Notes under the pieces: generated by a model
What the model saw: only the letters and a program-made list of their open reading frames with translations
Told to the model about the DNA's origin: nothing
The model's database searches: none
In this document: piece by piece, positions 7,125 through 64,000 of the stretch
Layout of the letters: each line of letters begins with the position of its first letter
How positions within the stretch are numbered: the stretch's first letter is position 1
Translations under genes and position numbers: made by a program
Source of the DNA: Octopus sinensis
Taxonomy: Eukaryota
Direction of reading: 5' to 3'
DNA: 64,000 nucleotides
Assembly: GCF_006345805.1 (NCBI RefSeq)
Contig: NC_043009.1
Location: 26,784,001 to 26,848,000, forward strand

Positions 7125-7308
7125 GTTAACAAAGCTACCAATAGTTTCATGCAGACAGAAATCTCTCAACAATTATCAAGCCTGCCACATGGGAACATTG
7201 TAACCCATCTCCATCTCCATCTTGGAGACAAGTACCAACATTCCTATGTGGAAGGTTCACTAATTGAAAAATTTCTCTCTGCATGAAACCATTGGTAGCG
7301 TTATTAAC
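7125..7308. repeat. 38-bp inverted repeat with 108-bp spacer (MITE-like)
   Basis: 7125-7162 vs reverse complement of 7271-7308: 34/38 identical. Confidence 0.85.
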
Positions 7309-36900: not shown

Positions 36901-39900
36901 AGTTAACTCTTTGTCAGTTGTCAACCATTTTACTACTCCCTTTTTCATGCTTTCAATGACAAATAGAGAGTAGTAAATCAACAACTGACGAGTTTTCTTC
37001 TTTTAGTATTTTGTCCCATACTTATCTCTCATGTATTTATGTATTTCCCACTTGCTGGTGATGTACTGTACTTAATGTGTATTACATATACCTGTTGCCG
37101 GGTCATAGTGTTAGTGCATGCATATACAGCTGCATGCGTGTGCACATACACGCGAGTACTGTCCAAATCTCCAACCAATCACATACAGCTAGCTGGCATT
37201 CAATTGGCGTATCGAGTTTCGGGCATTTTGATTGGGTTTTGGATAGAAAATTCACAAAAAGTCACTTCTATTGATTTTTTAATAGCTTTGCGGGGTGACT
37301 GGGGAAATGTAAAGATGTGCACGACCACCCTTGGACAGTTTTGAATGACCATAGAAAGTGCAAGCCCGCTAACTGAAAAATTGTGGATTTGTATAAAGGA
37401 CACACACACAGACAGACATTTTGCCATTTATATATATAGACTAGCAGAATTGCCCGGCGTTGCTCGGGGCTGAATTGCTTGAAAGTACTGTTAATGATTG
37501 CACTGAATTTATGATTATTCAGGCAAATATTGATATAAGTTTACGGTGGGAGATAAGGACTTAACGATCAAACGTGTGCCATTGCATTGTTTTGGGGGAA
37601 CCAAATTTCTGATGAGCATTATAGGGGCACCAACTTTAAGTTTGAGAAAGTGTGGTGGTAGTCCGGGGTGCTCAAAGGAATTGAGTACCTCTATTGGATA
37701 GTTGATGACGTCCTCTGGGTCAGGAGTTGTATCGATAGACTGATATACATAGACTTCCCCAGGAATGAGTTTTAGCATTTCATCATTAATATGGTGAACA
37801 GTTTTATTCCTCGGGGCCAGTATAGCCTTTTTGCCAATCCAATCCATATTCTGATAATTAGCTTGTAGATCTGGGAACACTGCATCTCAGAGATCAGAAG
37901 GCGTTTTAACAATGGTACAAATGGAATCGATGGCAATATTACCATTTTCATCCCTGGTATTTTGCCTTCGCCAAGTGCAAGGAGGGTGGTGTGAGGAAAT
38001 GCTGCTGATGTGATATTACGTCGCATATGAGCACGCAAATTGGTGTGAAGTTTGAGAGTTACTTCCCTTTATTAAAAAAAATATGCATTAAAATGGAAAA
38101 AAATGATGGTAAATTATTTGTAAAATCATAGACTCATCGTAGACGCGCGCTAATACCCAGAAGGGCTCGATATGAATCACGATTGGTTAAACTGCATCGC
38201 AAAATGTGGGAGTAGTTAGGAATCTAAATCGGAGTAGACAGACACACAACCTTTCTTTTATATATAAATATTTTCGTCCTAAAAAACTTTGTATGGATTG
38301 AATGGTTACCTCTATGGAAATATATACACGCACATTATACATACATGTGTGTATAGATGAATATATAAATACATTTAAATATCTATATACACTTTTGGGC
38401 GATCTTTCTGCTACTTGTATATACTTTAGATCTTATATTCGTCCTAAAAAACTTTGTATGGAGTGAAAGGTTACCTCTATGGAAATATATACACACACAT
38501 TATACATACATCTGTGTATAGATGAATATATAAATACATTTAAATATCTATATACACTTTCGGGCGATCTTTCTGCTACTTGGATATACTTTAGGTCTTA
38601 TATTCGTCCTAAAAAACTTTCCTGTCACACACTCACGCACACTCACACACACGCTAGCTTACAATTTTATTTATATATTTGCATGTCTATGTGTGTAAAG
38701 AGGAAGTGGGAATGCAGAGTGAAAGAGTCAGTCACTACAAAAAGTGAATTACTTTCACTTTATTTGTTGCACACTGTGTGTGTGTGTGCGTGTGCCCACA
38801 CTAAGAAAAGCATTTGACTTATACACCACAATGTGAGTTTTCTCTAAATTTTGCTTAATTGGGGTTGAAATTTTAAAAAGTGGACCTGGCAAGACCCGAT
38901 GCAGTCTACTCTTAAAAATGCTAGGTAAATTGTAATTGAAGAAATCCTATATTGTAGATTTCTATAAGAGACAAAGGGAGGCAGATAAAATCTGCCTTTT
39001 ATAATAAGAGATATATATAGGTAAAACAAAAGCTAAGGGAGGAAGAGGAGGCAGAAACACTCCCAAGCATACATACGTATGTACATTTAGAGAAACAGCT
39101 TACCTCTTTGATGTCATGGGTGTTTGAAAGTCTATCAGATTCATATCTGCATGATTCTCAACTTTTGTAGAACATGGTTCAACATGGAACACAGACAGTC
39201 TTGCAATCCGTGTGGAACGACGACTGCCACTTTGAGCCCCTGGCGTCACTATTTCAAAGAGTGAAAATTACTGTTTAAAGAGGTTTCAGATGAATTTGAG
39301 ACATATTTGTTTTAAAGCGTACAGACAAAAACATTTATGAAAACAAGTCACTACAGTCACTGAAATTGCTAGAAATAGATAGATAGATAGATATGGGGAA
39401 TATGTTCAGTATGGAGCTGGGAACACCATACCTGAAATCAGGGCTGAGGAATCGAAACAAAAAAATTTCAACTCCGACTCCTGTACTATTGGCACATGAC
39501 TCTGACTCCTCTTTATGTAATTAATTGATTGTGGTCTACATATTCCATAAAGCCTATGCATACACACAAGTTTGAGTAAGCCTATATGTTATAACTGGTT
39601 TATATTAAAGAATAAAGATATTATGAGTCGGAATCAGAGCCAATATAGTTTTACCAACTCCAGCTACCCCTTAATTGTTTCAGACTCCAACTTCGACTCC
39701 AGCTACCCAATGGTTAAAATGCATATTTGATACATGCACTGGGCAGAATAGATGTGTTTATCAGCAGCAAAAAGCCTCATGGAGAGCATATCTGTTGCAC
39801 AGGTCCAGGGACAATAATGAGTGGATTCAGATCATCAAAGGCATATTGTGTGAACATGTCTGGTTCAGTGGTCAGGGTATTTGGCTAATGATCGTAAGTT

Positions 39901-42900
39901 CAATTCCCAGAAATGCATTGTGTCCTTGAGCAAGACACTTTATTTCATGTTGTTCCTGTCCATTCAGCTGGCAAAAATGAATGCTGTAACTCCCCAAGAA
40001 CTACATCAAGTGTACATATGTCTGTGGAGTATTCAGCCACTTGCACATCAATTTCATGAGCAGGCTGTTCTATTGACTGAATCAACTGGGACCTTCGACA
40101 TCGTAACCAACAGACTAAGCTGGGTGGGACTGGTGTCACGTATCATATGTTGGGTATATGCACGTACATGTTTAATTTTGATGCAGTGTGGTTAATTTTG
40201 GGCAATGTTTTAGGTTTATAGTAGATTCCAGTGTTGGTGTGTATGTGTGTAGGTTGATAAATAAACAGAGAGAAAGAGAGATCCTAATTTGTCAAATATT
40301 TGAAAAAAAAAAATAAAAGTTGTATCCAGATAATTCTGCGTTCTTCATTATAGTGTTAGACAGGTTTAAAACTATCTTAAATTTTACAAAACATGGCAAT
40401 TTATCACACCATTTTCAATTCTCACAGCACCACCAACATCCACAACAACAACGTGATTGTTTTCAGGCTGTAACTCGTTAACTGAGTGATAGGTTGACCC
40501 ATATTACAACCCCACAATCACTGTACCTTAATTAACAAACACCATACCTTCACACTATTTCTCCTAAATCAATCATTGTCTTAAGAGATGATTAGGTTTT
40601 ACTTACATCCACCCCTGGACCTTCTTTTTGTTGCCGGGGTCTTTTTCTCAGTGGTACTTTCACAATTAAGACTGGCATGTTCAGACAAATCAACCAGCTG
40701 TCCAACCGGTACACAATCTTTGGTGTTTGTAGAATCTGAATAAAATTTAACAGAAAATACACATTACATTTTGAAATTTAAAGTAATAAAAACAGGATGA
40801 AAACACACACACAGAGGATGCAGCAGAAAAACTTCCCAAGTTTTACATACCCATTGCTGTGGCTCCAGTGAAGCTAGGGAGATGGAAATGTTGTTTCCAT
40901 GGAGAAAATGTTTTACCGCTATTTTTTTTCAGTTACAGTCATGGCTTGGATCAATGGACATCATACATTTTTTGTGGAACCCTTTATCCCAAATGGTAAA
41001 ACCAAAGTTTATTTGCAACACCCTGTATGCATGTGTCATCATCACCATCAAGATTTAATGCCTGTTCTTCATGCTGGCAAGGATTGGATGATTTGATAAG
41101 AGCCGGCAAGTTAGGGGGTTATGTTAAGTTCTATTGGCTGTTTCGGCATGGTTTCTGCAGCTATATACCCTTCCTAACACCAACTACTTTCAAGAGTGTA
41201 CTGAGTGCTTTTTATGTGACACCAACAAAGACAAAGTGTCTTTGAGTGGTGGGGAGTAGTAATGAGGGAGGTGGCTTTGTACTGGTTGATGAGAGATTAA
41301 AATAGAAAGATAGAGATAGGAGTCTTGCTGTAGAAGAGCTACAAGGATATCTCAGTTGGAGAAGGCGACTTAGAGAGGAAAAGAGAGATGATGGTGGATA
41401 TGTGCCGGGGACATGCCCTCAAGGCACCAAGGGGGAGAATATAGGTAGAGCGATACAGAGGATTGGGCTGGACAGGGATATATATAGAAATAAAACTATT
41501 TTTAATAGTGTACAGAGTAGTACATTGATAATAATAATAATAATAAGATTAGTCAGAAGAAATGAAAGAATTGTCTTTTAGATTATTTAAACACAAGTAC
41601 AGAAACTCTTCAAATTTTCCAAGGAAATAAAATGAAATAAAGTAATATAAAGTAGAGTTACGGTTAGGGTTTTAAGAATTATTTTGTCTAACGTTTGAGA
41701 ATGTTTTGTGTGTGTGTGCATGTGTACACACTACACACTTAAACACACTCTTCCAAGTGCAGCAGAGCTTAAGAAAACATCACAGCAAAATGGATATCTT
41801 ACGACTATCAGGGATGAAACAAATACAAATTTAATGTAGATGTAAGGATTAGAAAATTTTACAATTCCTAAAGATTATATTAACAAACCCCGCAAAGTAA
41901 TATCCTCACAAATAAAGCCCTCAGCAGCAACGTCCAGTAATATATTAGAGCAGAGTGAAGAGATTTTGAAAGGCAAAAACACATGGCTTGTTAAAAAAAA
42001 AAACAAGAAACAAAATATAGTGGGTGACAGACAAAAGTCGAGTGGGAAGTACAATAATAAACTAATGCCACCTACCTTTACTGGGCGATTTGGGAAATGA
42101 TTCCATTGCAGAAAGTCTCCGGCTGACTCTCTGAGAACGTCTTCTGCTTTAGGAAAAATAACAAAAGTAAACTGAATTAATTTTCTTTAAAATCTTTGGT
42201 TCTAAGCTTACAAGGAAACAATGTAAAGGAACTGACCAAGTTTGAGGATAACGTATTGGCACACAAGTAGTAGTGAGTATAAGGACTAGCTGAGAGGGGC
42301 TCAATAGAGGATGAGTGGAGACAAGTTTAAGGATTGAGCATAGCTCAATGGAAGATTGGTGGAAATAAACACAAGAACAGCCAAGTATGATTCCATATCT
42401 GTAATTTATGGAACTAGATAAACTGGATTGGCAGACATTTTTTATGCATTAAGACACACAAACTGTTAATCTAGACATTGCTTCACCTGCTCATCCCCAT
42501 TTTGCTTGAAAACTTTAGAAAATAAATCAATAAAATGATGAAATACAAACCTTGGTGGTGACTGGAGGACAAACACTTCATCATTTTCCTTTTCAACGTT
42601 TTCAACTGATGTAGATGACAATACTGGCTGACAGTTGTCTGGAGTGTTCACTGTTTCACCGAGTAGACGTGAGCGCCGGTTTGTCGATGCTCTCTTTCTC
42701 ACAGGAGTTATATCTTGAAGGAGAGGGCTGGGTACAGTTGGAACATAGCTACGTCTTGAAACCAAAGGTGTTACCTTTGCTGAGTCAAAAGAATTCTGCA
42801 CAGTTTCTTTATCCTTTGGCTCTATCTCAACTGTTTGAAATGTTTTATCATCTGAGTCGTCTTTCTCATGAATATCAGCCTGGATGTCTGCTGACCGTTC

Positions 42901-45900
42901 CTGGGTTGTCTCTGTGAAAACTGGCATGACAACTGGACTCCGGGGAGAATCTGAAAATAAAAAAATTCAAAGAATTTATTTAATCCAAAAGTTAAAAACT
43001 TAAAGAATTTAAACAGACTAAGATTTTTTTTTTTTAACCCCAACGTAAGTACAAGCATGGCAGTGTGGTTAAGAATTTCACATTGCAAAGATGGGGTTCA
43101 AGGATCAACTCCATAGCACAGCACTTTGGATGACTTTTACTACATCCCCAAAGCCAACCAATGCTTGTGAAGGAATAAGGTAAAGTAGATATGATGATGA
43201 TGATGATGATGGAAACTGCAAAAATCCCATCATAACATCTACTTTTCCATGTTTGCATGAGTCAGATGGAGGTTATTGGGGAAGATTTTCTATGGCTGGA
43301 TGCCTTTCCTGTCATTAACCCTGACATTTCCAAGTATCACTTAACGTAATAATGTTAATCATCTTCCATAATGATGATATTGAAATAAAGTGAGTGAAAA
43401 TATTTCAGTTTTACAATAGAAAATGCAGGCTTGAAGAAAGGAAATCTTACCCAAACAATGCGGCTTTGGTGATCGAACTGGACTCTCCACTTTGAAGAAA
43501 TGGCCATCAAATACTTTAACTGATTCTTCCTTCTCTGCTTCATCAGCATCACCCCCAGTTGAATTATTTGCAATTTTCTTCTTCTGTGCGATAAATTGGG
43601 CAAACTTTGATTTTCCTTTCACTTTCGAAATCTTGGAAGTAACAGGCTGAGAAAAAAATGAAAACAGGAGATAATAATAATTTTATCAACAATGTCGTTT
43701 AACCATCAATTAAAACCTGTTTCAGTCATTGGAATTTTTAGTTGAATAAACCGACCCCTGCACTTATTCTATCAGTCTCTTTTGCCGAACCGCTATGTCA
43801 TGGGGACATAAACACACCAACACCAGTTGTCAAGTGGTGATGGGGAATAAACACAGATATATATACATGTATATATACAACGGGCATATTTCAGTTTCCA
43901 TCTACCAAATCCACTCACAACGCTTTGGTTGGCTTGAACCTAGAACCATGTGGTTGGGATTTAAGCTTCTTACCACACAGCCACTTCTGTGCTTATTACT
44001 TATATATATATATATAACATGACTGTGTGGTTAAGAGGTTTTCTTACAACCTCATGGTTAGGGGTTCAATCCTACAGCATGATATCTTGGACAACTATTT
44101 TCTATCATAATCTCAGGACAACAAAGGTCTTGTAAGCAAAATTTGGTGGACAGAAGCTGTGAAGAAAGCCCAGTAGATAGGCTATGGCTAGAAGCAGCCG
44201 TGGCCAAACAGATAGAATAGTGGAAATTCCATCAAGCATTTTCATGTCTTGACCACCAGAATTTAATTGGTTCCATTCCACTGTACTTCTGAGATTCATA
44301 TCAAAAGAAACTAGTTTGAAAAAAAAAACAAAAAAAAAAAACCCCACCCTACTCCAGTCATAATTATTTAATGTCCATTCCCATGCTGAGGTGGGGTTGA
44401 ATGGTTCAACAGGAGTTCATGGGCCAGAGGACTGCACCAAGCTCCACTGTCTGCTTTGTCATGGTTTCCTAATGCACAATCCTTGGTGTATTGAGTGCTT
44501 TTTTACATGGCACCAGCATTAGTGAGGTCACCAAATAACTTGTAAGACAAGGCACAGAACCTGGGATTGAGGGAGGTGACTTTGTGCCAGTGATGAGAGG
44601 TTAGAGTTTGATAGAAGGACAGGAACAGGTGTCTTGTTATAGGGGGAGAGACAATGGCTACTCCAGCTGGAAAAAACAGAAGGTGCTGATGAAAATATAT
44701 CAGGGAATATCTTTAAGTTACAGGAAGGTGAATGAAAGAGAATGGTAGAGAGGATTGGACTAGGTGAACAGATCCACTAATTCATAAAAAAAGTTAGAGA
44801 AGCACAGCAGGTGTGAAGTGGAATAAACAAGATTTCTGACCAATGGCCAAGCAATCATGATTTGAATTCAGAATGCAGAAGTGTTCTATCTCATATTATA
44901 CTTGACTGATTCTGATGTCCACATTTTTGAGAAGTCTCTATGTTATCCTTTGACTCAATAGAAAACAAAATCTTTTTCAAATCATACCCTTAAAAAGGAA
45001 AAGGGTACATTAGATAATGAATCCATAAAAAGATGGGATGGTCAAGGATGGAATACTTTTGATAACAAGTCAGCTTGATGAGGGTCAACTTGGGGACTAA
45101 ACAACATTGCCTCTTACCTTTGCTTTCTTGATTTTCTTGACAGGTTTGATCGATGGAACATCTTCTGCCTGCCAATTGTTGTCTTTCAATTTCTGTAAAT
45201 CAGCAAACTTTTTCTTCACATCTTCCACCTTAGCAAAAGAAAAACATATTTTTAGCTATAGTCCTCAAAGAAAATACAAGAAAGCTACTTATAAACTTGA
45301 TAAAGAAACGTGTTTGTTTTTTAACCCTTTAGTGTTCAGATTATTCTATCAAACATAATGCTTATTGATTCCCATTGATTTGAATTAATCCTGCATTATC
45401 TCATATCTTCAAGATCTTGATGGTGTAATTACTTCATGTAGAATAACATTGTAGGGTAGGTGTGAGGGCCTGGATCTGGTCAGTTTGAACATAAAACCGA
45501 TTAAATATTTTGGCCGGATATGGCTGGTTTAAATACTAAAGGGTTAATGTAATTTTAATGCAGATCAAGACAAATTCAAACATGGAGAAGTGCCAATTTT
45601 ACACAAATCACAATCTATTATTATAAAACCAAAAAAATACAAATAATTCTCCTCTCTTTTCCTTTTGGGGTAGCCAAGTATATCTTCTATAGTAAGACAT
45701 CATCATCATTATTGTTTAAAGTCTGCTTTCCATGCTGGCATGGGTTGGATGGTTTGACTGAGGACTGGTTAGCCAGAAGGCTACACCAGGCTCCAATCTG
45801 ATCTGGCAAAATTTCTATAGCTGAATGCCCTTCCTGACGCCAACCACTCTGAGAGTGTAGTGGGTGCTTTTTACGTGTCACTGGCATGAGGGCCAGTCAA

Positions 45901-46512: not shown

Positions 46513-48393
46513 TGTTAGCATAAGAGATACAGGATGAGCATCAGAGCATCATAACTTTCTGAAGCATACAAATAACTCAATTTTACAAATTAGTTGCCTT
46601 TGATAATATGCACACACACGCAAACCTTCATCCAACATTGTAGTTACTCCTGAAGGTTTTAACAAATATTAACCAGTTTTGGGGGCCACCATCTGCTACC
46701 ACCCCACCAGTCTGCTGAAATACTTACAGGGTTCAATAAAAGGTCAGTCATGTGACTGTAGTAGAAGAGAGAAGAACCAATGGAGAGAATTTTTCATTAG
46801 TGAAAACCACACTATAGCAATAAAAGAAAAAAAAATGTCTTACCTGGAAATCCACCATGTCCCAAAACCCTTGCAAATCTTCACATGTGGTTGTCTTCTC
46901 GCCAGTGTTAAATTCACAGTTGTCAACCAAACCAATGAATTGATGGAAACGTTGTGAAATGAGCAGCTTAGCTTGACCAATAACTGTGCGGACGTCACCC
47001 TCAACTGAAATCATAGAAAAGCCATCAATGACAGCGGCAAGACACACTCTCACAAAAAAACACAAGCAACAGGTAAAACCTGAAGCAATAATCACAAAGG
47101 AGAACCCCTACATGATTGCTCAACCAATTAAAACTAGCAGCGAGAAACATTTCCCTTGAATCATACCTTACGCAGCGTTTCTCAACCAGGGTTCCCCGGA
47201 ACCCTAGAGTTCCACGAGAAAGAGTGAGATAAGCTAATGCTAATTTCATGATTGTAATATTACAATTCATGCACAACATATTGGTTATTGTAATACAGAT
47301 GGAGGCGCAATGGCCCAGTGGTTAGGGCAGCGGAATCGCGGTTTCGATTCCCAGACCGGGCGTTGTGAGTGTTTATTGAGCGTAAACACCTAAAGCTCCA
47401 CGAGGCTCTGGCAGGGGATGGTGGTGATCCCTGCTGTACTCTTTCACCACAACTTTCTCTCACTCTTACTTCCTGTTTCTGTTGTACCTGTATTTCAAAG
47501 GCCCGGCCTTGTCACACTCTGTGTCACGCTGAATCTCCCCGAGAACTACGTTAAGGGTACATGTGTCTGTGGAGTGCTCAGCCACTTACACGTTAATTTC
47601 ACGAGCAGGCTGTTCCGTTGATTCGGATCAACTGGAACCCTCATCGTCGTAACCGACGGAGTGCTTCCTTCCTTCATTGTAATACAGACATTATCCTATC
47701 TAACCTATTATGTTATCAAAGAAATATAACAACAATATATATATATATGATATTTACCATGTGAACTACGATGAAAAAAATATGAGAAAGTTATAGTATA
47801 TAATTATTTTTGTGCAGAGGTTCCTCGAGGCATGTAATTTATTTTAAGGGTTACGAAAGGGTAAAAACATTGAGAAACACTGCCTTACAGTCTTAAAGAA
47901 AGGATGATGGATACATCAGCTAACATTTATTTTAATATTATGCTATAATTTAAAGATGGTGAGCTGGTACAGTTCTTAGTACACTAGACAAAAATGATTA
48001 GCGACATTTTGTCCATCTCTATGTTCTGAGTTCAAATTTTGCCAAGGTTGACTATGCCTTTCATCCTTTTGGAGTTGATGAAATAAGTACCAGCTGAGTA
48101 ATTGACTTAGCCCCTCCCTTATAAAATTTCTGGCCTTGTATCTATAGCAGAAAGGATTTTTATGTTATAACTGCAAAATGAATAAAATCCCATGAAGTAA
48201 TAATCAGTGAAAACCACCAAGAGGCAATCATAATCTGGATAGTTTATTTTTTGATTTGTTTCAACTGAAGCTTCCACAACACTCGGCTATCTTCAAGATA
48301 AAGTGTCAGTAACAGCACACAGACAGATGTACAAATGGGAGAAAAGAAGGCTCAATAAATATAGAAGAGCTTATAAATTTGCTTTGTATGCTG

Positions 48394-48437
<44 letters not shown>

Positions 48438-51400
48438 ATTTCGCTCTTGCGTCTCATGTTTGATCTTTGACTTCTGGCCGAAATCAGATCGCCATGTTGA
48501 TTCGTTAGTTACTGCACGCATATTTTTTTCTCTCCTTCTTTCTGTGTTTTTTTTTCTCTGTGTATCTTTCTGTTGAAGAGAGTAGGCTCGAAACGTTAAA
48601 GACTTGTTTTATTTATATTTCCTGAGCGCCATACTAATACAATTGTTTGTTTGTTTTTCACCTGCCTTCGTCTTTTGTCTATTTTCATAAAGCTTCCCGT
48701 TATATATATATATATATATAATTTTACTTTTAGAACTCAACAGAGCAAAACAGGTCTGCAGCAAGTTTAATATGACACTGTGCCCCTCCACACACACAAA
48801 TAAAAAAACCTCTTCTATATCAAAACAAGTCTAATGAAGTTTTATAAAACATGGAGTCATTTAACCTATTGTTACTTTAACATTTCATACTATATAAACT
48901 GTGACAAGCTCTTAATCAAGGAGTCCAAAAGACAGCGCTAACTGTAGCAATGGAATTCTGATAAATGTGAAAAGAAAAATAATCTAATAACAGAAAGATT
49001 TCAATCTATTTTCTTACCTTCTTCACTGAGGGTCGGTACAACTACCTCCCAAACATCAGACAGGTTGTTTAGTATTTCAGTTTGTGATACCACAAGGTTC
49101 CTGAAATAAGGCACATTGTGTTCTACGTTTTCTGTGTCAGATTTTTCTGTCTCTGAATTTTGTTGGGAAGAGTCATCAGATGACGATTCCTGTAAGACTT
49201 GCCCTGCTGATTCTTGGCTAACAGCCTCCACAGTCTCCTCAAGTGTGGTCGCTGGGGCTTCTTGGGTGGCTATTCCAGATGCATCCTGGGTAGCTATCTC
49301 TGCTACTTCCTGTGGGACATCAATTACTTCCCCCTGGGCAACAGCCTCCTTCATCTCTTGTGGTTCCATCACTGGTGTTTCTAGGGTGAGAGTCTCTGCT
49401 GCATCCTGTGGGACAACTACTGCTGGTGATTCCTGAGTATCTGCCTCTGTTGGTGCCACCTGAGTAACTGTTTCTACTGGTGCCACCTGAGTAGCTGTCT
49501 CTGCTGGTGTTTCCTGAGTATCTGCCTCTGCTGGTGCCACCTGAGTAACTGTCTCTGCTGGTGCCACCTGAGTAGCTGTCTCTGCTGGTGTTTCCTGAGT
49601 ATCTGCCTCTGCTGGTGCCACCTGAGTATCTGCCTCTGCTGGTGCCACCTGAGTAACTGTCTCTGCTGGTGCTTCCTGAGTATCTGCCTCTGCTGGTGCC
49701 ACCTGAGTATCTGCCTCTGCTGGTGCCACCTGAGTAACTGCCTCTGCTGGTGTTTCCTGAGTAACTGCCTCTACTGATGCCACCTGAGTAACTGTCTCTG
49801 CTGGTGCCACCTGAGTAGCTGTCTCTGCTGGTGTTTCCTGAGTATGTGCCTCTGCTGGTGCCACCTGAGTAACTGTCTCTACTGGTGCCACCTGAGTAAC
49901 TGTCTCTGCTGGTGCCACCTGAGTAACTGCCTCTGCTTGTGTTTCCTGAGTATGTGCCTCTGCTGGTGCCACCTGAGTAACTGTCTCTACTGGTGCCACC
50001 TGAGTAACTGTCTCTGCTGGTGCCACCTGAGTAACTGCCTCTGCTTGTGTTTCCTGAGTATCTGCCTCTGCTGGTTCCACCTGAGTAACTGTCTCTACTG
50101 GTGCCACCTGAGTAGCTGTCTCAGCTGGTGTTTCCTGAGTATGTGCCTCTGCTGGTGCCACCTGAGTAACTGTCTCTACTGGTGCCACCTGAGTAACTGT
50201 CTCTGCTGGTGCCACCTGAGTAACTGCCTCTGCTTGTGTTTCCTGAGTATGTGCCTCTGCTGGTGCCACCTGAGTAACTACCTCTGCTATCTGCTCTGTG
50301 ACAGCTGCTGCTGCCTCCTGGGTAACTGACCCTTCTATCTCTTGGGTCCCTGATGTCACTTCTTGAGATTCCATCACTGGTGCCTCTTGGTTAACCGTCT
50401 CTACTGCCCTTTGACCATCTGTTTAAAAAAATAAAAAACAATGATTTCAATTCCCTGTTAATAGCATTTTTCAATAGGAGCAGCAAAACTTAGTAAAATA
50501 ACTTTGTCGTCATTAAGCTGATGTTGGAACATAATATGAAATTTTGACAAATGGTTCTAATTTAGATCAGTGCTCTGCAATCTTTTTTTCACTTGCAGTA
50601 CACTTATATTCTTTCCAAAATTTGGCGCCATACCTCAACTAAAAATATAACGAAAAGTATTCTTTTACTTGTTTCAGTCATTTCACTGCAGCCATACAGG
50701 AGAACCATCTTCAGTCGAACAAATCAACCCTAGGACTTATTCTTTGTAAGCCTTATTCTATTGGTCTCTCTTGCCGAGCTGCTAAGTTACAGGGACATAT
50801 ATACACCAGCATCAGCTGTCAAGCAATATTGGTGGGGGGGGGGGGCAAACATAGACACACACAAATATATACATATATATATACAATGGGCTTCTTTCAG
50901 TTTCCATATACCAAATCTACTCACAAAGGTTTGCCTGGCCTGAAGCTATAGTAGAAAGCACTTGCCTAAGGTGCCACACAGTGGGGACTGAACCTGGAAC
51001 CATGTGGTAGGGAAGCAAGAATCTTACCACACAGCAACGCCTGTGCCTTTATATAGGGGTAAAAAAATTATATTCAGGTTACACTGTGGCACACCAACCA
51101 GTATGCTGCGGCATACCAGTTGCAGAGCACTGGTTTAGATCACTTCAAAAAAGGAAAATTGTAATGCAGAATCAGGGATGGTTTGAAATGGGTTGGGATC
51201 AAGGTTAGATGACTTAGAATTCAATAATTTAAAGCTGACAATCATTTCTGCCATGCACAAACCACACAGAAACCAAGACCCTACTGGAAACACTTATCAT
51301 CGCAATATTTGAACCCAGAAAATAAGGAACACTATGTAGTAGGCACCATAAAAACACATAAATCCTTGCCTCTCATCTGCTACTTCATTGGCATATGATG

Positions 51401-54400
51401 GAACCTCTACATGGTTATGACTTGCTAGAAACAGTTATCAAATTTCCTTCATATTGTCTAAAATGACAGACAGGTCAAAGAATGTGGTCATTATGATTGG
51501 AAACCTTTAACCAAAGAATTTGCTTTGTTAGTGAAATCAAAATCAATTCAATGACTGGCATTCGTGCTAGTGGGGTGCAAAGAGCACCATACGAGTGTGA
51601 ACGTTGACAGAGCAGCTATTCGAGTATGATCATTACCAGCGTCGCCTCACTGGCACTTATGCCTGTGCTAGTAGGGTGCCAATGGCACCATCCGAGCATG
51701 ATCGTTGCCAGAGCAGCCAACTGGCTTCCGTACACGTGGCATGTAAAATGGCACTATTTGAGTGTGATCTTTACCAACGTCGCTTCACTGGCACATGTAA
51801 AAAAATTCGAGCAAGGTCGTTGCCAGTACCGCCTGACTGGCCCCCGTGCCAGTGGCACATAAAAAGCACCCACTACACTTTTGGAGTGGTTGGCGTTAGG
51901 AAGGGCATCCAGCAGTAGAAACTCTGCCAGATCAAGATTGGAGCCTGGTGCAGCCATCTGGCTCGCCAGTCCTCAGTCAAAATCGTCCAACCCATGCTAG
52001 CATGGAAAGATGACGTTAAACGATGATGATGATGATGAGTGTTTATACAGGAACAAAACAACAATTTCTGTATTGCGGGATAGTTTAATCTTTTCATTAC
52101 CATAGTTCTGTTGAAATATGGCTATCTCTCCTTTAATTTTGGAAATAACGAAGTATTTAGAAAAATTACTGTCATAATTAAGCAGGTATTTGAAACGTAC
52201 ATTAATGTAGAATTTTGATGGAGGATTTTAAGTTAGATTTCTTTAAAACATAAAAGCTTGTATCACAGAACCAGGGGCAGTTTCAAGCTGGTAGGTATCA
52301 AAAAGTCACCTGGCCATTATCTGCACTCACCTGAAGTTGTAGAACCTTCTTTCAAAGCAGCTCTCTTGGCATCATCATCTTCCAATGAAAGAGTAGGAAC
52401 TAAAAGAAATAAAGTAAAAAACCATGAGCCTGCGTAAAAATTTATTCAAAACAATACTGAATTTACTCCAAACATTCTTGCACAGACACATGGCGAATCT
52501 TGGTTGTTTGACAATGAGAATTCAGTTGTTTGATAAACTGAATTACCTGCCCCTGAATTGACATTTAAGTAGCTGACTATCTCACAAACTCTTGTACCTT
52601 TAACATGCTAGAAATGGCTATGAAATCTCCTCCAACCACATCCTGTTGTCTGGCAAAGGTAGAACACATTAGTTAGTGTAGACTGACACACAAAACAATG
52701 GGATGGTTATGGTTGGAGTGCCTTTGATTAAAGGTCTTTCAGAAATAATAGGTGGAGTGAAGACTAAATGGCCAGCTAGATAAGGCAATTAAGATTGCTT
52801 CTAGCTCACTTTGACCATTCAAATTTTTCATTATCTTCTAGTCACATGCAACATCGAAGGAAGTTTACAAAGTAAAGAAGAAATAGAAGTGAAATATTTT
52901 ACCTTTATCCAATTGATGTTTGGGTATTTTACGACGTGTCATCTCAATCATTGGTGAATTCTTCAAAAGCTCAACCCTGGCAAAACAAAAATTGAGAAAA
53001 AGATTTTAAAAAAAAAATGTCAGAGAGGACAGGGAGGTTATTCAATTACATCAACAAGTACTTCACTGGTACTTTATTTTATCAACTCTGAAAGGGAGAA
53101 GGCAAAGTTGGCTACAGCAAGATTTGAACTCAAAACCTAAGGAGCCAGAAGGCCAGAAGAAATGCTGCTGTGCATTTTGTCCAACACGCTAATGATTCTG
53201 CCAACTCATTGCCTTAATAATAATATTGATTTCTTTATTGCCCACAGGCGGCTAAACAAGGACAGACAAAGGGATTAAGTCGACTACATTGACCCCAGTG
53301 AGTAACTGATACTTATTTAATCTACTCCGAAAGGCAAAGTTGACATCAACGGAATTTGAACTCAGAACATAAAGGCAGGTGAAATACTGCTCAGCATTTC
53401 GCCCAGCATCAATCCTTTCTGGTGTTGATTTGATCAACTAAACTCTCCATGGCAAACCACTTGCCTTCTATAAAATGTATGAAAACTTATAAATCATTCC
53501 AAGAACGAGGATTCAGTAGAAATGACAGCACTTCAGATAAGATGCTTTGCAATATTTAGAAACACCCGCCTAACCCATGCCAGTATGGAAAGTGGACATT
53601 AAATGATGATGAAGTACATGCTTAGGGTCTGAAAGGAAGTTAGGTACCATGGAAATGGTAAATGGTTTACAGCACAAAAAAAATCACTTTTGAATTTGTC
53701 AAAATAGTTGGAAGTGGTTTATATGATCGGAGTATTCATAGTGAGGATCTGATCAAAGACTTGGAAATTAAAATAAACGAGGAGAAATCGTTTCAAATAT
53801 AAAGTGGAAGTGTACAAAAATAAACATTTTCCATTTTACTGTTGGTTTTGTTTCATTTCAAAAAATAAAAAATTTATTTTATGGTTTATTATTGTTTTTA
53901 TTTTGAATTACATATATATGGGGGGCACAGAAATCATTTAAGTGATTAGGTTTCCATGAGTCTTAATCCGATCCTACCAGTATTTCAACTCAGAGCATAA
54001 CCAAACACCACCATGCTTAATACCTGACAATGCCAATTCTACCATCCATTCAACTTGTCTAAAGAAACAGTCTTTTCTAACTTACCATTCTTCGGCGACT
54101 GTGGTACTTTAACTGAATCCATCTTAAGACAAGAGGATGATTTCCTGGGTTTCTTTTTGCTATTTGGTTTGGAGTCAGAAGAAGACTGTCGATTCCTTTT
54201 CGACTTTAAGCTAATGCTGCTAACTGGAGTCTTGAAGACAGCTACATCAGCACTATTTCTAACAGGAGTGAATGGCGATTCAGTAGAAGTGGTGGCTACT
54301 AAACTTTTTTGGTCTTCTTTCTCAGGAGCTTCACTCTCTTCAACCATTCCAGACCTGTTTGGAGACGTCTCCTCGTCTTTTGCCTCACCATTTTTAGTGG

Positions 54401-57400
54401 GTGAATCACTAACTCTGAAAAATAAAAGTCATTTCTTTAACCATTAGCATTTAAATCGGCCATATCCAGCCAAAGTTTTCTTGTTTTATGTTCAAACTGG
54501 CTAAATCAGGCTCCTCACACCTACCCTGCAATGTCATTCTAAAAATAAACAATAACATCATTGAAATCTCAAAGCTATAACATAATGCAAGATTAAATCA
54601 ACACAATGTGAATAAATATGCATTAGATTTGACTGAGTAGTCTGAATTTTAAAGGATTAAATAAAACAGAATTTTTGAAAATACTTTCTTCACAAGAATG
54701 TCTTTTATTTTAGCTATAGAATTGCCGACATATTTTAAATAATTCTGGCTTGCTAGCAGAATTATTAGCATACTCTTTTACTTGTTTCAGTCATTTGACT
54801 GCGGCCATGCTGGAGCACCGCCTTTAGTCGAGCAAATCGACCCCAGGACTTATTCTTTGTAAGCCTAATACTTATTCTATCAGTCTCTTTTGCCGAACCA
54901 CTAGGTTACGGGAACATAAACACACCAGCATCGGTTGTCAAGCAATGTTGGGGGACAAACACAGACAAACATATATATATATATACATACATACGATGGG
55001 GTTCTTTCAGTTTCTGTCTACCAAATCCACTCACAAGGCTTTGGTCAGCCCGAGGTGCCACGCAGTGGGACTGAACCCGGAACCATGTGGTTTGTAAGCA
55101 AGCAACTTACTACACAGCCACTTCTATGCCTATGTTGAAAGAAAAGTGCTTTGCAGCATTTTTATTGACACACTGCATTGTAAGTTCAAATTCTGTTAAA
55201 GTTGACCTTACCTTTCATCCCTTCAAGGGCTGATGTGCATAACTGTGAATTAAGCATGTTGTCATTAACTGTGTCTGAACGTAACATGGTGATATTTTAC
55301 TTTGTCCAGCAAACAAATGTTTTGCAGCTGAGCAGATGGTGAAACAAAAAACAAACCTTACATGGAAACCAAGTAAAGGTTAGCAACAGGAAAAGCATTC
55401 AGCTGTCGAAAATCTGCCATGCTACAGTTTCATTTAACCATTGCCAGTATGGAAAAATGGTCAGAAAAACAATGACGATGGTTCATAAGTATATGCATAC
55501 ATACATATGCTCATATGTACACTCGCAAAGCCTGGTGACTGGATATGGTAGGTGGAAACTGAAAATAGCCCAATATGTATCTGTGTGTGTGTATCCTTGT
55601 CTCCACATCATGTTTGTAAATGAACATCTCCATCATACAAGCGATGTTGAGGCCATAGAAACTCTGCCCCAACAAAGTCTATCTGACCCATGCAAGCTCA
55701 GAAACATAGACATTAAATGATGATGATGATAGCTCACACAAACACTCTCTTTCTCTCTTTTCATTCTAATACATACCTTCCAAAATTGTTGGTAGGAGGT
55801 TCGTCGAATCCACTGAAAAAGAAATTCTGAGTACTGTTCGGACTTAGCGAAGTTGAGAAATTATAAGATTGGAGATTTTCAGGAGCAGTGAAGACAAAAT
55901 TTCCAGGTACGAATGAGACACTCTCTCTTTCCGACCGTGTTGTAACCTTTGAAGACAATGTGTCAAAGTTGTTCGTAGTTGCAGGCTTACTTTTACCTTT
56001 AACAGGAGATTCTGTAAATGATTGAAATAATAATAAAAAAAATTAATAAAATAGACACAGGTATGGGTGTGTGACTAAGAAATTGGCTTCTTAACAATGT
56101 GGTTTCAGATTCTGTCCCACTGCATGGCACCTTAGGCAAGTGTCTTCGACTAAAGCCTTTGGCAAAGCAAAGCCTTGTTAGTGTGTTTGGTAAATGAAAA
56201 CTGAAAGAAGCTTATCATATATGTGTGTGTGTGTTTATCTTTGTCATGGCATCACAGGATAGTGCCTCCTAACTGGCTCCTCTGCCAGTGGAACATAAAA
56301 TGCACCATCCAAACGTGGTTGATGCCAGTGCCCACTGACTGGCTCTTGTGCAGGTGGCACGTAAAAAGCACTCTCCAAACATGATTGATGCCAGGCCCAC
56401 CTGACTGGCTCCTGTTCCAGTGGCACATAAAAAGCACCCACTACACTCTCAGAGTGGTTGGCGTTAGGAAGGGCATCCAGCTGTAGAAACATTGCCAAAT
56501 CAGATTGGAGCCTGTTGCAGCCACTGGCTTTCCAGATCTCAGTCAAACCGTCCAACCCATGCCAGCATGGAAAATCGACATTAAACGATGATGATGATGT
56601 TTCTAAATTTGTGAACACCTAATAATTAAAATGGAAAAGCTATCAGAAAACTGATTTCTATTTATTTTTCAAATATATGATCTGCACCATTTCTAATTCT
56701 ATTATGTGGTGAAATGTAAAAGTGCCTGTGTGGTGGCACATGAAAGTATCCAGCACACGGTATTTTGTCTGCCGTTAGGTTCTGAGTTCAAATTCCGCCA
56801 AGGTCGAGTTTCGGGGGTCGATTAAATAAGTACCAGTTACGCACTGGGGTCGATACAATTGACTTAATCCCGTTTGTCTGTCCTTGTTTGTTCTCTCTGT
56901 GTTTAACCCCTTGTGGGTAATAAAGAAATAGATATATATGTGACAGAATACAATTTAACCTCTCTACTTCCAAAAAGTCATGTATAGCGCATACCAGTGT
57001 GACACTGCTCAAGTGTACACTGAAATCTGCACCTGCATCATGCTTCACTCTGATGGCACATATATTTGTTATATGTCTTTCAAGATTTATTGAACTGTAG
57101 TCAACATTTCAAATCAATTCAATGAATTTCTCTTCAAAGCCAAACAATATGATTTCTATCAAAATGAATCTTCTAAATTCAAAATTTAAAACACATTTTC
57201 TAACAGAGGCATTGTCAAAGACGCTTACCAATTTTCGATTTTGCCTGTTTCTGAGTTACACTTGATGTTGTTTTAGCTTTTGTGGAAGGCAGTGTCCTAG
57301 TAGTTGCTCTGGTGGCTGCTTTGCTGTTATTGGTTTGCCTGGTGACTCTAGTTTGTGTAGTCAATGGTACTTTCTTGCTCTCACTTGCTGCCGTAAGCCG

Positions 57401-60309
57401 AGCTGGCTGCCTTTTGGTGGGTCCTTTTTTCTCTGGTAAAACCAAAGACGAAGTTTTCGGCTTGTGGGCAACATCAGCTTGGCGAGTTGTAGCTCTGGTT
57501 GTTGCACGTGTAGCAGCAGTAGTTGTAGCAGTAGTGGTAGATCTAGTGGTAGCAGTGGCTGCTCTTGTTTTGCGGGGAGGTTCCGCAACTGGCACAGTAG
57601 TTTTCACCTGTTTCTTTATAAAATAAATAAATAAATAAAATTAAGCTATTTTTCTTTTTATATAAAATCAAATTTTATATAAAACTAGCAGAGATACCTG
57701 GCATTGCCAGTGTTACATGCAATTGAAGAATTAGACTTTTCTGTTATATTTTCTGTAATGAACTGGAATACCTATGATTTGAATTTCATCAAAATTGCAG
57801 GTGAGGTTATTTCCCTCTTTACACACCCTAAAAACATTGTAATCATGACACATGTATCCCATACTACTGATTTTTATGTGTATATTCCAAAATTCCAGTC
57901 TTATAGAACATGTTAAAAGGATTTTGCTCCTGAAAAATGGAGGTCATGGAGCTCTAAAATGTGAGAGTTAAGGCCTCTGTTGGGAGTGGGTGCCTTAATG
58001 TCAACCAGAGAAGTTGAATTGTTGAGAATCTTTTTAACTTGGGTCTTATATCTATTGTTTGAATTTTTTTGAAATAGGAAATATATGTTCACTGGATTTG
58101 TAAAAGAGAGCAAAGCTACAGGAAATGAAAAGATGAATGATCACAATAAGCAGTCAGCTACCCTACCCAAGTCGTTACCACTCAAAATGTAGGATTCCTC
58201 ACCATCCAGGTGACAGGTTCAGCCGTAAGATGCATATGATTCTATAGCAATTGGAAAGGCGTGACCCAACTGAAATAAACATTAACAACTGTGTGACGTG
58301 AGGGCTAAGGAGAAATGAAAGTGTCACCTCTGCAGTTTATAAATGAACACTATACTGATACGTAACTGGACAGAATAAATTTACAATCTATGAATGTCTT
58401 TGAATAACCAGTCACTCATCTGGGAAGGCCTTGAAATCAATGTTACCATCTGGGGATTATGTGTGACCCAGTGATAATAAAAAGACTGAAAGGAGGTCTG
58501 CAACCAAATAACTTTACTCAACTCTTTGCAACTGAATCAGTGGAGGAAAATATGCCTCTCATTTACTCGACAATTTATGCATCACATTGCAGAAATCACA
58601 ATGCAAGTGTATGTCAAAGCAAACTCTTACACTGTTGTACCACTGAATTACAAATAATGCTTATCTTTTATGCTCAGGTGATCCTACAGCTTCCAAGAGT
58701 ACAACTTGTCTTTGCTGAGATAAAATGACTAAATTGTGGGTGTTAAGTCCCACTGAAGAGGTGTTTCTAACTTGTAAGATGAAATTTTATAAATATTACT
58801 TCATCTGTGTCTAATATCTATGGTTAAAATTTCATCATCAACAAAAATATATGAATTGTCACGGGAGTTATGGCCCTTATGCATAGAATATAATTTCCAA
58901 ATTTCGTGAAGATCCATTCAGTACTTTTGACCTGGTTTTGGATCATAAAAGAAATGACTAAAATTTGGGAGTTAAGGCCCCCATTAGGGTGCCTTAGAAT
59001 CCTCATGAGAAGTAGAAACTTTGAGAATACTTCTTGATGTGTGTCAATTACCCATGGCTGAAATTTCATCAACATCAAAAATCTATGAATTTTCATGGAG
59101 GTTCTGCCCCCTTTAAGCCATCTGAAATTCAAACTAAACATATTGCATTATTCCCACCCTTATGCATTGAATCTAAGTTCCAAATATCATAAGAATCCAT
59201 TCAGTAATTTTGGTCCATGAAATTGTATGAAACACACAGCATTATCCTTCTCCCTAGGCTTGGATTTTGTGTTCCAAATTTCATTAGCATCAGTGTTTTT
59301 GGATGTAGAAGTAACACACAAAACACACATAAAGACATTGACTTTGATATAATAGATATTGATATGCACATATACATACATGTATATATATATACACACA
59401 CAAAAAAAAAAAAAAAAAAGATAAATTGGTAGATACAACTGAGTGGGCAAAGAAAAATATGAGACACTTTTTTATTTTGAAAAACCTGGTACTTATTCTA
59501 TGTTTCTTCTTGTCAAACCAGTAAGTTATGGGGATGTAAATAAACGAACAGCAGTTGTGAAGCAGTGATAAGGGAGAAACACAGAGACAAAGACACACAC
59601 ACATTTACATATACTCTTTTACTTGTTTCAGTCATTTGACTGCGGCCATGCTGGAGCACCGGCTTTAGTCGAGCAAATCGACCCCGGGACGTATTCTTTG
59701 TAAGCCCAGTACTTATTCTATCGGTCTCTTTTGCCGAACCGCTAAGTGGCGGAGACATAAACACACCAGCACTGGTTGTCAAGCAATGCTAGGGGGACAA
59801 ACACAAACATACATGCACACACATATATACGACAGGCTTCTTTCAGTTTCCGTCTACCAAATCCACTCACAAGGCTTTGGTCGGCCCGAAGCTATAGCAG
59901 AAGACACTTGCCCAAGATGCCACACAGTGGGACTGAACCCGGAACCATGTGGTTGGTAAACAAGCTACTTACCACACAGCCACTCCTGCGCCTATATATA
60001 TATATATATATACGATTGATTTCTTTCAGTTTCTGTCTACAAAATCCACTGAAAAGGCTTTGGTTGGTTTGAGGCTATAGCAGAAGACACATGCCAAGTC
60101 ACCACACAGTGGGACTGAACACAGGACCATGTGTTTTGGAACCAAGTTTGTTACCTCACAGCCACACCTGCACCCATATATATGTATGCATGTATATGTC
60201 TATATATATGTGTACATCTATATGATTGATTGATTGATTGATTCTAGTTTCAGCTTATGAGCTGTGGCCATGCTGGGGCACCGCCATAGAAATACATCTA
60301 TACATATAC

Positions 60310-61928: not shown

Positions 61929-64000
61929 CATTTAAAGTTGAGAAGTCTGGAGAAATGTGAAATGAATTACCTTGTTCAAGGACACTTCACACACTGCGCA
62001 GTCCAGGAACTGAAACTACAGCCTTTTTGTTATGACCCAAACAATCTAGCCACTAAGCCAGATGACATCACAGGACATGATTAAGACATATAATCCACCA
62101 GCATTTCTGCCTGTCGTGATAAAAAAAAATGTCAGCTCCAAATGCAATCCTTTAATATTTTTTAAAAGACACATACTGTCAGTAACCATAGTCAGTGTAC
62201 ATACCAGTGGCACATTAAGGGCACCATTCGAGCGTGGTTGATGCCAATACCACCAGACTGGCCCTCGTACTGGTGACATAAAAAGCACTCACTACACTGT
62301 CAGAGTGGTTGGATTTAGGAAGGGCATCCAGCTGTAGAAACTTTTCCCAGATCAGACTGGAGCTTGGTGCAGCCTTCTGGCTTGCCAGCCCTCAGTCAAA
62401 CCATCCAATCCATGCCAGCATGGAAAGCGGACGTTAAACGACGACAGTGATGATGATGATATACCTATACATATTTACATACATATATTTGTATGTGTGT
62501 ATGTATGTATAAGTGTTTGTATGTTGTCTGAACACGTGATAGTCATAAATAAGTTTACTGTTATGCAACCAGGATCATTCTTTTCCAGTATACTGTGAAG
62601 ACATGTCTGACTCTGAGGAAATGTTACTGTTCTTGGAAAATGGTGAGAGTTGGTAACAAGAAGGGCACCAGACTGTAGAAAATTTGCTTCAATAACCTCC
62701 ATTCAACCCGCACAAGCATGGAGAAGTGGAAAACAAATGATGATGATGATGATGATGATGATTTATGTTACCTTTCTTTGCCAATGCCAATCACTAAGAT
62801 CATCAGCAGGTGCAAAAGCTTTGAAATCCCGTTTATGGCCAACCCCACAGACTTTCAGCCAACTGTAGTTTGATGATATTTTCAAAGAACTTCCTCAAAG
62901 ACTTCTCAACATGTACGCAAATTAATCTCCCACAAGATAGAATACCAGCTCTATCTAAAGTAGCCTTCTCATAGTGCACTACCACCTATTTCTGGTATTT
63001 TACGAGGAATTTGTAGACAAGTGATCTTCCACCATTTTCTACTCCTATGGACCCTGTTGATTCCTATTTTGCTCAGGTGGACCCTCAGAGCCATCCCAGG
63101 TTTTAAAAAAAGAGCCTATTGTATTTTTATAATTAAATATTATTAATAATTATATATAAAAAAAAATTGTTAAAATATTTCATGTATTGTAGACATGTAT
63201 CAAATTTCTTGCATAGAAACTTTAACAACAAAATCTTATATGGATCCCCAAAGGCCATATGAACCCTGGTTGAGAAACCATTGCTGTAGACCAAGATGTT
63301 ATACAACGCATCACTGAATTTTTACAGAAAATGATGGACTGAGTGCTTAATCTTTTAGCACTTGAACCAGTTGTATCCAGCCAAAATATTATTCAACTTG
63401 TTTTCAGTTAAAACCGACCAGATCCAGCCTCTCACAGCAATAAATTGGACAAAGAGATCTGAATGTTAAAAGGTTAAACTAGGTTAGAACCAAATAAAAT
63501 AGACAAGGCATAAAAAAAAACTCACTTTAATATGATGCCTTCAGTGGGTTATTCCATAATAATAATAATACAATAAGACATCAACCCAGACCTTATAAGC
63601 CATTATAATAACTTGAAAGCCGCTTATCCACTCTGAAGATAAATGGTTAACTGTTTTCTGTTCAGCAAGCTGAATAGGAACCTGGTTTGTCTAAAGCAGT
63701 GTTTCTCAACCATTTTTCTACCTATGGTTCCCTATTTTACTTAGGTGGATCCCTATAAACATTTAATTTGATGTTTTAAAAAAATCAGATTCCAATTTCA
63801 TAATTAAATATTATTAGGAACTGTATAAAGAGAAGTGTTTAAATATTTCAAGAATAGTCAAAGAGTAAACCAATTTATTCTTTTATTCTTTTACTTGTTT
63901 CAGTCATTTAACTGCGGCCATGCTGGAGCACCACTTTTAGTCAAACAAATCGACCCCAGGACTTATTCTTTGTAAGCCTAGTACTTATTCTATTGGTCTC

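Follow-up and report, generated by a model that had tools for sequence, protein, structure and literature searches.

The stretch of DNA analysed here (the window) comprises 64,000 nucleotides of the Octopus sinensis genome (contig NC_043009.1, positions 26,784,001 to 26,848,000) and carries on its minus strand a DLGAP5/HURP gene, one exon of which holds 32 tandem copies of a 27-bp unit encoding nine amino acids around a TQV or TQE motif, upstream of the GKAP domain. We propose, with a probability of roughly 0.6 and on the basis of sequence comparisons, that this array is a coding minisatellite of recent, lineage-specific origin, by which a disordered HURP spacer with conserved acidity but freely changing sequence has been lengthened. 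An earlier note on the same DNA had proposed that the array loads many LC8 (DYNLL) dimers or PIKK phosphates onto the protein; this proposal is not supported, in view of the low scores of the units in an LC8 binding matrix, the charged residues at position +1 of the TQE units, the one-residue linkers between motifs and the chance-level occurrence of such motifs in the family. In the literature searched, no paper discusses octopus DLGAP5 or describes the array, and the locus is machine-annotated in RefSeq.

Anatomy of the array

The array exon comprises the following parts, given in the order of translation after the exon as a whole.

49018-50418, minus strand: array exon, 1401 nt, phase 1 at both ends, with an AG acceptor and a GTAAGA donor, both kept in O. 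bimaculoides
50288-50416, minus strand: 5' flank inside the array exon, with degenerate older units GTQEIEGSV, TQEAAAAV and TEQIAEVV
49424-50287, minus strand: tandem array of 32 units of 27 bp (9 amino acids), 22 of TQV type and 10 of TQE type (codon-register cut and Tandem Repeats Finder)
49121-49423, minus strand: 3' flank of the array, about 100 amino acids, acidic, with Q[E/D] every 8-9 residues (PQD, PQE, TQD, TQE, SQE, LQE)
49018-49120, minus strand: start of the conserved GKAP-region homology (HNVPYFRNLVVSQTEILNNLSDVWEVVVPTLSEE)

Cutting the exon in its codon register placed the array between 50287 and 49424 on the minus strand (864 bp, 32 units, the copy number being that of one assembly). 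The 22 TQV and 10 TQE units counted in the earlier note were recovered exactly, whereas the interval it gave, 49412-50275, has the right length but lies 12 nt away from the array. Tandem Repeats Finder reported a single array at 49420-50288 with a period of 27, 32.2 copies, 84% matches, no indels and a score of 1192, which ranks first among the tandem repeats of the window. The consensus 27-mer was matched 22 times with at most three mismatches, where shuffled sequences are expected to yield no match, and occurred at no other site in the window. The exon is bordered by a pyrimidine-rich acceptor (...tttaaacAG) and a donor AAG/GTAAGA, and one frame is open from end to end, in agreement with the claim of a 1401-nt exon free of frameshifts and stops. 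A Pfam scan of the array exon matched no family.

Comparison of units at different distances revealed a higher-order organization, as had been claimed for blocks of three to four units: identity reached 92.4% at a lag of four units within units 1-20 and 95.6% at a lag of three units within units 20-32, as compared to only 83-87% at a lag of one unit, and units 13-19 are a near copy of units 2-8. Moreover, threonine is always encoded by ACT and glutamine always by CAG, and the 32 units hold two synonymous variants. Because the DNA units are near-identical and the higher-order repeats are clear, the array is best explained by recent amplification and not by 32 independently kept motifs. The head-to-tail arrangement of units of high DNA identity, a unit length divisible by three, the higher-order repeats and the turnover of unit type and copy number between close relatives described below are those of a coding minisatellite.

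The encoded segment has a net charge of -50 and consists of A, T, V, E, Q, P, D, H and S only, without lysine, arginine or any aromatic residue; from this composition it is predicted to be disordered. The degenerate older units that the earlier note had described on both flanks are indeed present, namely TQE, TQE and TEQ on the 5' side and PQD, PQE, TQD, TQE, SQE and LQE on the 3' side, where the flank is 91% identical to O. bimaculoides. The array lies upstream of the GKAP domain, as claimed, and ends about 100 amino acids ahead of the point where conservation in the GKAP region begins (HNVPYFRN, 49120). The open reading frames on the plus strand over the array (CLCWCHLSN...) are the reverse complement of the repeat and show no sign of a gene.

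Retention of the array in annotated transcripts

Isoforms were assessed from annotated RefSeq models, namely 15 of the 31 in the LOC115218498 cluster. The array is kept in these annotated transcripts: in all 15, the preceding exon (...KEGSTTS) is spliced to the array exon and 19-28 units are retained. The isoforms are 876-957 amino acids long and differ only inside the array, by multiples of nine residues. Units 26-27 of the window are missing from every one of them, which suggests that the window and the annotated genome differ in copy number. The array probably varies in length, as the earlier note had supposed, given 32 units here, 19-28 in the RefSeq isoforms and another unit type in O. 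bimaculoides.

Fourteen of the 15 isoforms can be derived from the array of the window by two or three GT/GC-AG removals of 54-297 nt each. However, CAG/GTG occurs in every TQV unit and every unit ends in ...CAG, and because every unit thereby offers GT/GC-AG sites, such derivability cannot separate cryptic splicing from allele-length differences or an alignment artefact. The spread of isoform lengths may reflect annotation inflation, allele-length variation or cryptic in-exon splicing.

That the array is an assembly expansion, or is spliced out and missing from the protein, might be suspected from a copy number known from one assembly, the gap of 362 Ns within the O. bimaculoides array, the 31 RefSeq isoforms with differences inside the array, the GT/GC-AG introns that can be drawn within it and an exon length that is a multiple of three. 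This explanation is nevertheless very hard to reconcile with the occurrence of a 27-bp array at the same exon in two independent genome assemblies and with the 19-28 units joined to flanking exons in all 15 isoforms. Furthermore, skipping the array exon would damage the GKAP domain, because the conserved beginning of the GKAP region lies in it, and variant units with higher-order structure are unlike the product of a collapse or expansion error. A protein search with only the unique flanks of the exon returned O. bimaculoides alone, and neither transcript contigs nor a further octopodid. For annotation, the value of recognizing the array lies in that it would explain the inflation of LOC115218498 to 31 isoforms as well as the gap-truncated gene model of O. 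bimaculoides.

Turnover in octopods and recurrence in other animals

In O. bimaculoides, the same exon with the same splice sites is present and its array is broken by the gap, past which 11.9 copies with 95% matches were found, mostly TDADTQVAP and TEADTQVAP. Both Octopus species share the 15 nt ACTCAGGTGGCACCA encoding TQVAP, while the remaining four codons of the unit differ. These sequences point to concerted evolution of an array that is older than the split between O. sinensis and O. bimaculoides.

In the octopod Argonauta hians (GAB1601558), a linker of 457 amino acids with a net charge of -63 occupies the same position, but it is built from an unrelated 11-residue unit, DAVKPASPVSC, in about 12 copies and contains two S/TQ sites (serine or threonine followed by glutamine) and no TQ[TV]. 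Bivalve and gastropod linkers are 88-121 amino acids long, and those of Argonauta, Mytilus, Haliotis, Sinanodonta, Saccostrea and Argopecten contain 0-2 S/TQ sites. By comparison, the linker of the window, taken from the SPMIEMTRR motif to the GKAP domain, is 474 amino acids long, with a net charge of -79 and 42 S/TQ sites. The claim of lineage specificity held against the other mollusc linkers, that of Argonauta included. As an observation apart, Argonauta GAB1601558 has a second unrelated array downstream of the GKAP domain, at residues of about 1200-1340 (16-residue unit VVSPAETTNMEQSTTD, about 9 copies), where octopus has none.

Among 99 DLGAP5 homologues with enough upstream sequence, about 8-10 carry unrelated arrays within 400 amino acids upstream of the GKAP domain, including those of the eel Conger conger, the frogs Hyperolius riggenbachi and Anomaloglossus, the nemertean Tubulanus and the amphioxus Branchiostoma. 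The statement that vertebrate HURP has no such array thus stands for TQ arrays but not for arrays generally, as the eel and the two frogs demonstrate. The arrays of Argonauta (11 amino acids, about 12 copies), Conger (XP_061079134; 21 amino acids, 5.5 copies), Hyperolius (XP_068110505; 11 amino acids, 11.5 copies) and Branchiostoma belcheri (KAI8498479) lie at the same site of the protein as that of octopus, between the basic N-terminal half and the GKAP domain, and are likewise in-frame, head-to-tail, rich in P, E, S, T and A and devoid of conservation across lineages. They differ from it in their unrelated unit sequences and in having nearly no S/TQ, and the octopus array has the highest copy number and TQ density: in the 400 amino acids upstream of the GKAP domain, the homologues have a median of 3 S/TQ sites and a 90th percentile of 6, whereas the O. 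sinensis isoform measured has 36. Of 93 homologues, 81% are net acidic over the 100 amino acids preceding the GKAP domain, and 97% are basic over their N-terminal 150 amino acids. Judged from these homologues, the linker before the GKAP domain is a recurrent site of repeat expansion and acidity is its conserved property. In the prawn Macrobrachium nipponense (XP_064108094), the core of the GKAP domain itself is present in four tandem copies, an unusual architecture for the family.

A protein search with the whole array exon gave many low-complexity candidates, of which only O. bimaculoides and one bacterial protein passed. The latter, Kiritimatiellae MBN1671439 from a metagenome-assembled genome, carries an array of APAEADTQA-like nine-residue repeats with 56% identity to the octopus exon in local alignment, an apparent convergence of low-complexity repeats. 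Because this array exists in an organism that lacks both LC8 and ATM, such repeats can arise without either.

A proposed coding minisatellite in an acidic spacer

Following this, we propose that one 27-bp unit within an already acidic, Q/T/E/V/P/A-rich and disordered stretch just upstream of the GKAP domain would have been amplified, the likely route being replication slippage or unequal exchange that acted initially on single units and later on blocks of 3, 4 and 11 units. The array would have remained in frame because the unit is a multiple of three, and it may have been tolerated, or possibly favoured, because the constraint on the linker appears to concern its bulk character (acidic, proline-punctuated, unfolded) and to leave its sequence free. 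The outcome would be the growth of a linker of about 100 amino acids, as in other molluscs, to 474 with its net charge of -79, in which the array could act as a spacer or electrostatic element, for example by altering reach or by damping the strongly basic N-terminal microtubule-binding part, and not as a string of specific docking sites. Function, if any, would thus reside in bulk: length, charge and maybe interplay with the basic half. The 32 TQ sites would then be a single chance dipeptide copied 32 times. By our own estimate, based on residue frequencies in the flanks of the exon (S+T about 0.185, Q about 0.10), an S/TQ is expected in about 16% of random 9-mers, and the amplification of a unit bearing TQ is on that account unremarkable.

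Several observations weigh against this proposal. TQVAP was retained by O. sinensis and O. bimaculoides alike, in contrast to the four remaining positions of the unit, which changed. Across the arrays of the two species, variation at the T and Q codons comprises two synonymous types (ACT/ACG and CAG/CAA) and no non-synonymous one, as compared to 3 synonymous and 14 non-synonymous types in the other seven codons (Fisher p about 0.06), which weakly hints at constraint on TQ; this hint in part reflects descent, because the TQVAP codons are identical in DNA between the species. Moreover, the relic units of both flanks retain xQ[E/D]. Finally, roles as a spacer are hard to falsify, and the electrostatic role in particular is put forward here as pure inference. 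On present evidence, the octopus gene offers a clean example of how the disordered linker of a conserved mitotic protein can be lengthened by minisatellite amplification, of linker growth by unrelated units that took place independently in several animal lineages, and of a chance dipeptide that, once amplified, mimics a motif array.

Possible multivalent docking of LC8

Alternatively, the TQV units might bind LC8 dimers across two in-register HURP chains and turn the linker into a dimerised, stiffened rod, as in ASCIZ, Nup159 and the L2 segment of KANK1. The 22 T-Q-V anchors lie in a proline-punctuated, apparently disordered region, and a TQV anchor has been validated in Panoramix (RDAGTQVR, dissociation constant 0.14 uM), whose D at -4 and A at -3 are shared by the main O. 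bimaculoides unit TDADTQVA. Furthermore, the spindle protein CHICA/FAM83D uses LC8 motifs, and in KANK1 at least 15 individually weak, non-canonical motifs bind LC8 cooperatively. The paralogue GKAP/DLGAP1 binds LC8 by an IQV and a VQV motif upstream of its GH1 domain, as correctly stated in the earlier note (PMC12797016).

The flanks of the anchors, however, argue for this docking being unlikely. A position matrix was built from the training set of LC8Pred, comprising 79 binders and 32 non-binders that contain an anchor (PMC6607443, Table S4), as a crude stand-in for that program; its medians were 13.7 bits for binders (leave-one-out) and 8.1 bits for non-binders. By this approximate matrix of our own, the units of the window score from -0.6 to 6.4 bits, which corresponds to the bottom 0-6% of binders and lies under the median of the non-binders; the O. 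bimaculoides unit TDADTQVA, which resembles the Panoramix motif, scores higher at 8.2. A TQV anchor is present in none of the 79 binders, and one TQV peptide of the training set is a non-binder. Valine at -2 is likewise found in 0 of 79 binders, glutamate at -4 in 4 and alanine at +2 in 2, hydrophobic residues at +2 being poorly accommodated by LC8 (PMC6607443). The LC8 preferences for a polar -4 (D/S/T), a large -3, a small or polar -2 and D, E or P at +2 are not those displayed by the units; the residue at -3 is small in the units that bear alanine there, and threonine at -3 is common among LC8 binders. With respect to the uncharged, buried positions -1 and +1 of the anchor, 22 units have an acceptable TQV, while the 10 TQE units place a charge at the buried +1, which is described as 'highly unfavorable' (PMC6607443).

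The spacing of the units is equally restrictive. A period of nine residues minus a motif of eight leaves a linker of one residue, whereas the reported linkers between LC8 motifs measure 3-9 residues in crystal structures, 3 in ASCIZ, 4-5 in Nup159 and 3-4 in KANK1. Successive units are thus too close for adjacent dimers and at best alternate units could be occupied. The array resembles ASCIZ/ATMIN, Nup159, KANK1-L2 and CHICA/FAM83D in having many short Q-centred motifs in a disordered region, but differs from these clients in the poor match of its flanks, in the third of units charged at +1, in linkers of one residue as opposed to at least 3-4, and in consisting of near-identical recent copies. 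With GKAP/DLGAP1 it shares the C-terminal homology domain and the position of xQV motifs upstream of it; the two sites of that protein (LSIGIQVD and QSVGVQVE) are, however, 17 residues apart and each has G at -2, S at -4 and D or E at +2, which the octopus units do not have.

The evolutionary evidence points in the same direction. The linkers of Argonauta and the other molluscs are without TQ[TV], and other lineages grew the same linker from unrelated units. Of 98 homologues, 19 have a [TIV]Q[TV] motif within the 200 amino acids before the GKAP domain, as many as chance would give (0.21 per 200 amino acids, about 19%); because of this rate, the DLGAP5 family gives no prior for binding of LC8.

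Possible phosphorylation by ATM/ATR

The array might also be an S/T-Q cluster domain, that is, a dense target of ATM, ATR or DNA-PK in which checkpoint phosphates change the activity of HURP at the spindle. The residue before the threonine is hydrophobic or acidic and basic residues are lacking nearby, both of which favour ATM substrates. All sites are threonines, and threonine is generally a poorer PIKK substrate than serine. Cluster domains have been defined by at least three S/TQ per 100 or at least three per 50 residues (PMC3564818), a density that the octopus linker, with its 42 sites and about 5-6 per 50 amino acids in the array, exceeds many times, albeit by a measure of low specificity, as more than 25% of yeast proteins satisfy the rule of three per 100 (PMC3564818). 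S/T-Q-E is enriched at phosphorylated sites (PMC3564818), which fits the 13 TQE sites present here. Nonetheless, a cluster domain is improbable, since the 32 sites of the array are one amplified dipeptide and therefore non-independent, and since they are missing from every orthologous linker examined outside Octopus, all of which have 0-2 S/TQ. Known cluster domains of ATM/ATR (Tel1/Mec1) are heterogeneous and conserved, whereas the octopus array consists of a single dipeptide, with threonine only, and is confined to the genus Octopus among the sampled species.

Both ideas can be joined in a scenario in which HURP of the genus Octopus carries a cooperative docking array, with alternate TQV units binding LC8 dimers or the TQ sites being phosphorylated in bulk by ATM/ATR. 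If this were true, the floppy acidic linker would become a switchable rod or charge block that separates the GKAP domain from the half that binds microtubules, and thus a newly evolved regulator of kinetochore-fibre dynamics that is tunable by copy number. An LC8 or kinase role would moreover make the array a rare example of repeat expansion creating a new multivalent interaction, with copy number as its natural tuning knob. The evidence does not favour this scenario, which we consider unlikely, and the amplified spacer is retained as the preferred explanation.

Identity of the host gene and further features of the window

The host gene is, as judged by sequence homology, the octopus orthologue of DLGAP5/HURP, in agreement with the earlier note; this identity is supported by the match to the GKAP family of Pfam and by collinearity over the full length with DLGAP5 proteins, among them those of Argonauta and Mytilus. 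When the full-length Argonauta hians homologue was used as tblastn query, the exons were found collinear from 61481 to 34036 on the minus strand. Apart from the array exon, they are the following.

61317-61481, 57230-57601, 55776-55952 and 54086-54422, minus strand: N-terminal HURP exons, found by tblastn with Argonauta GAB1601558 and kept in O. bimaculoides; they encode a basic T/R-rich region and the motif FxFTAPxNLxSYxF
about 52892-52977 and 52332-52400, minus strand: the two exons immediately upstream of the array exon, encoding ...VELLKNSPMIEMTRRKIPKHQLDK and VPTLSLEDDDAKRAALKEGSTTS; the latter exon is joined to the array exon in the RefSeq isoforms
46841-47005, minus strand: next exon after the array exon, core of the GKAP domain (VEGDVRTVIGQAKLLISQRF...DLQGFWDMVDFQV), found by Pfam and tblastn
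45118-45231, 43452-43652, 42553-42951, 40608-40736, 39103-39249, 36062-36136 and 34036-34170, minus strand: C-terminal HURP exons

The exon at 46841-47005 matched PF03359 with E=4.5e-9 and 36.7 bits (cut-off 27), and the same family is annotated in the O. bimaculoides orthologue. Among named relatives, the closest were a DLGAP5 from Mytilus coruscus and DLGAP5-like proteins from Pecten, Conger and Strongylocentrotus. Outside the array, the translation of the window is 100% identical to the O. sinensis RefSeq proteins of LOC115218498, overhangs at splice junctions excepted; the 31 clustered isoforms of this locus bear varying names ('disks large-associated protein 5', 'neurofilament heavy polypeptide', 'uncharacterized').

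The N-terminal exon at 57230-57601 (minus strand) is of basic, T/R/A-rich low complexity (TRAATATTRSTTTATTTAATRATTRATTRQ...), and its Argonauta orthologue contains long poly-T/R tracts. At 54086-54100 (minus strand), the window reads CAGTCG-CCGAAGAATG/GTAAGT as compared to CAGTCGCCCGAAGAATG/GTAAGT in O. bimaculoides (positions of about 7140-7160 of its locus). When the strong GTAAGT donor is used, O. bimaculoides is in frame (VPQSPEE-W-VELLKNSPMIEM, compare VPMSVEE-R-LEILRN of Argonauta) and the window is frameshifted; a weaker donor, TG/GTAGAA near 54040, would restore the frame if used. This difference of one nucleotide reflects a true deletion or else an assembly error in a homopolymer, and it probably explains why the O. 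sinensis isoforms that were read start at the methionine of MIEMTRRK, without the N-terminal microtubule-binding half.

Within a HURP intron, an open reading frame fragment at 37515-37880 (minus strand) matches the Pif1 helicase 2B domain (PF21530, E=1.6e-15), which is probably a remnant of a Helitron-type transposon, as Helitrons carry Pif1-like helicases. Further repeats of the window are a 165-bp tandem duplication at 38269-38620 and a 66-bp repeat in 2.7 copies at 56261-56438. Dispersed elements resembling short interspersed nuclear elements were found near 51800-52040, 56300-56600 and 62200-62460, and are common to introns of O. bimaculoides.

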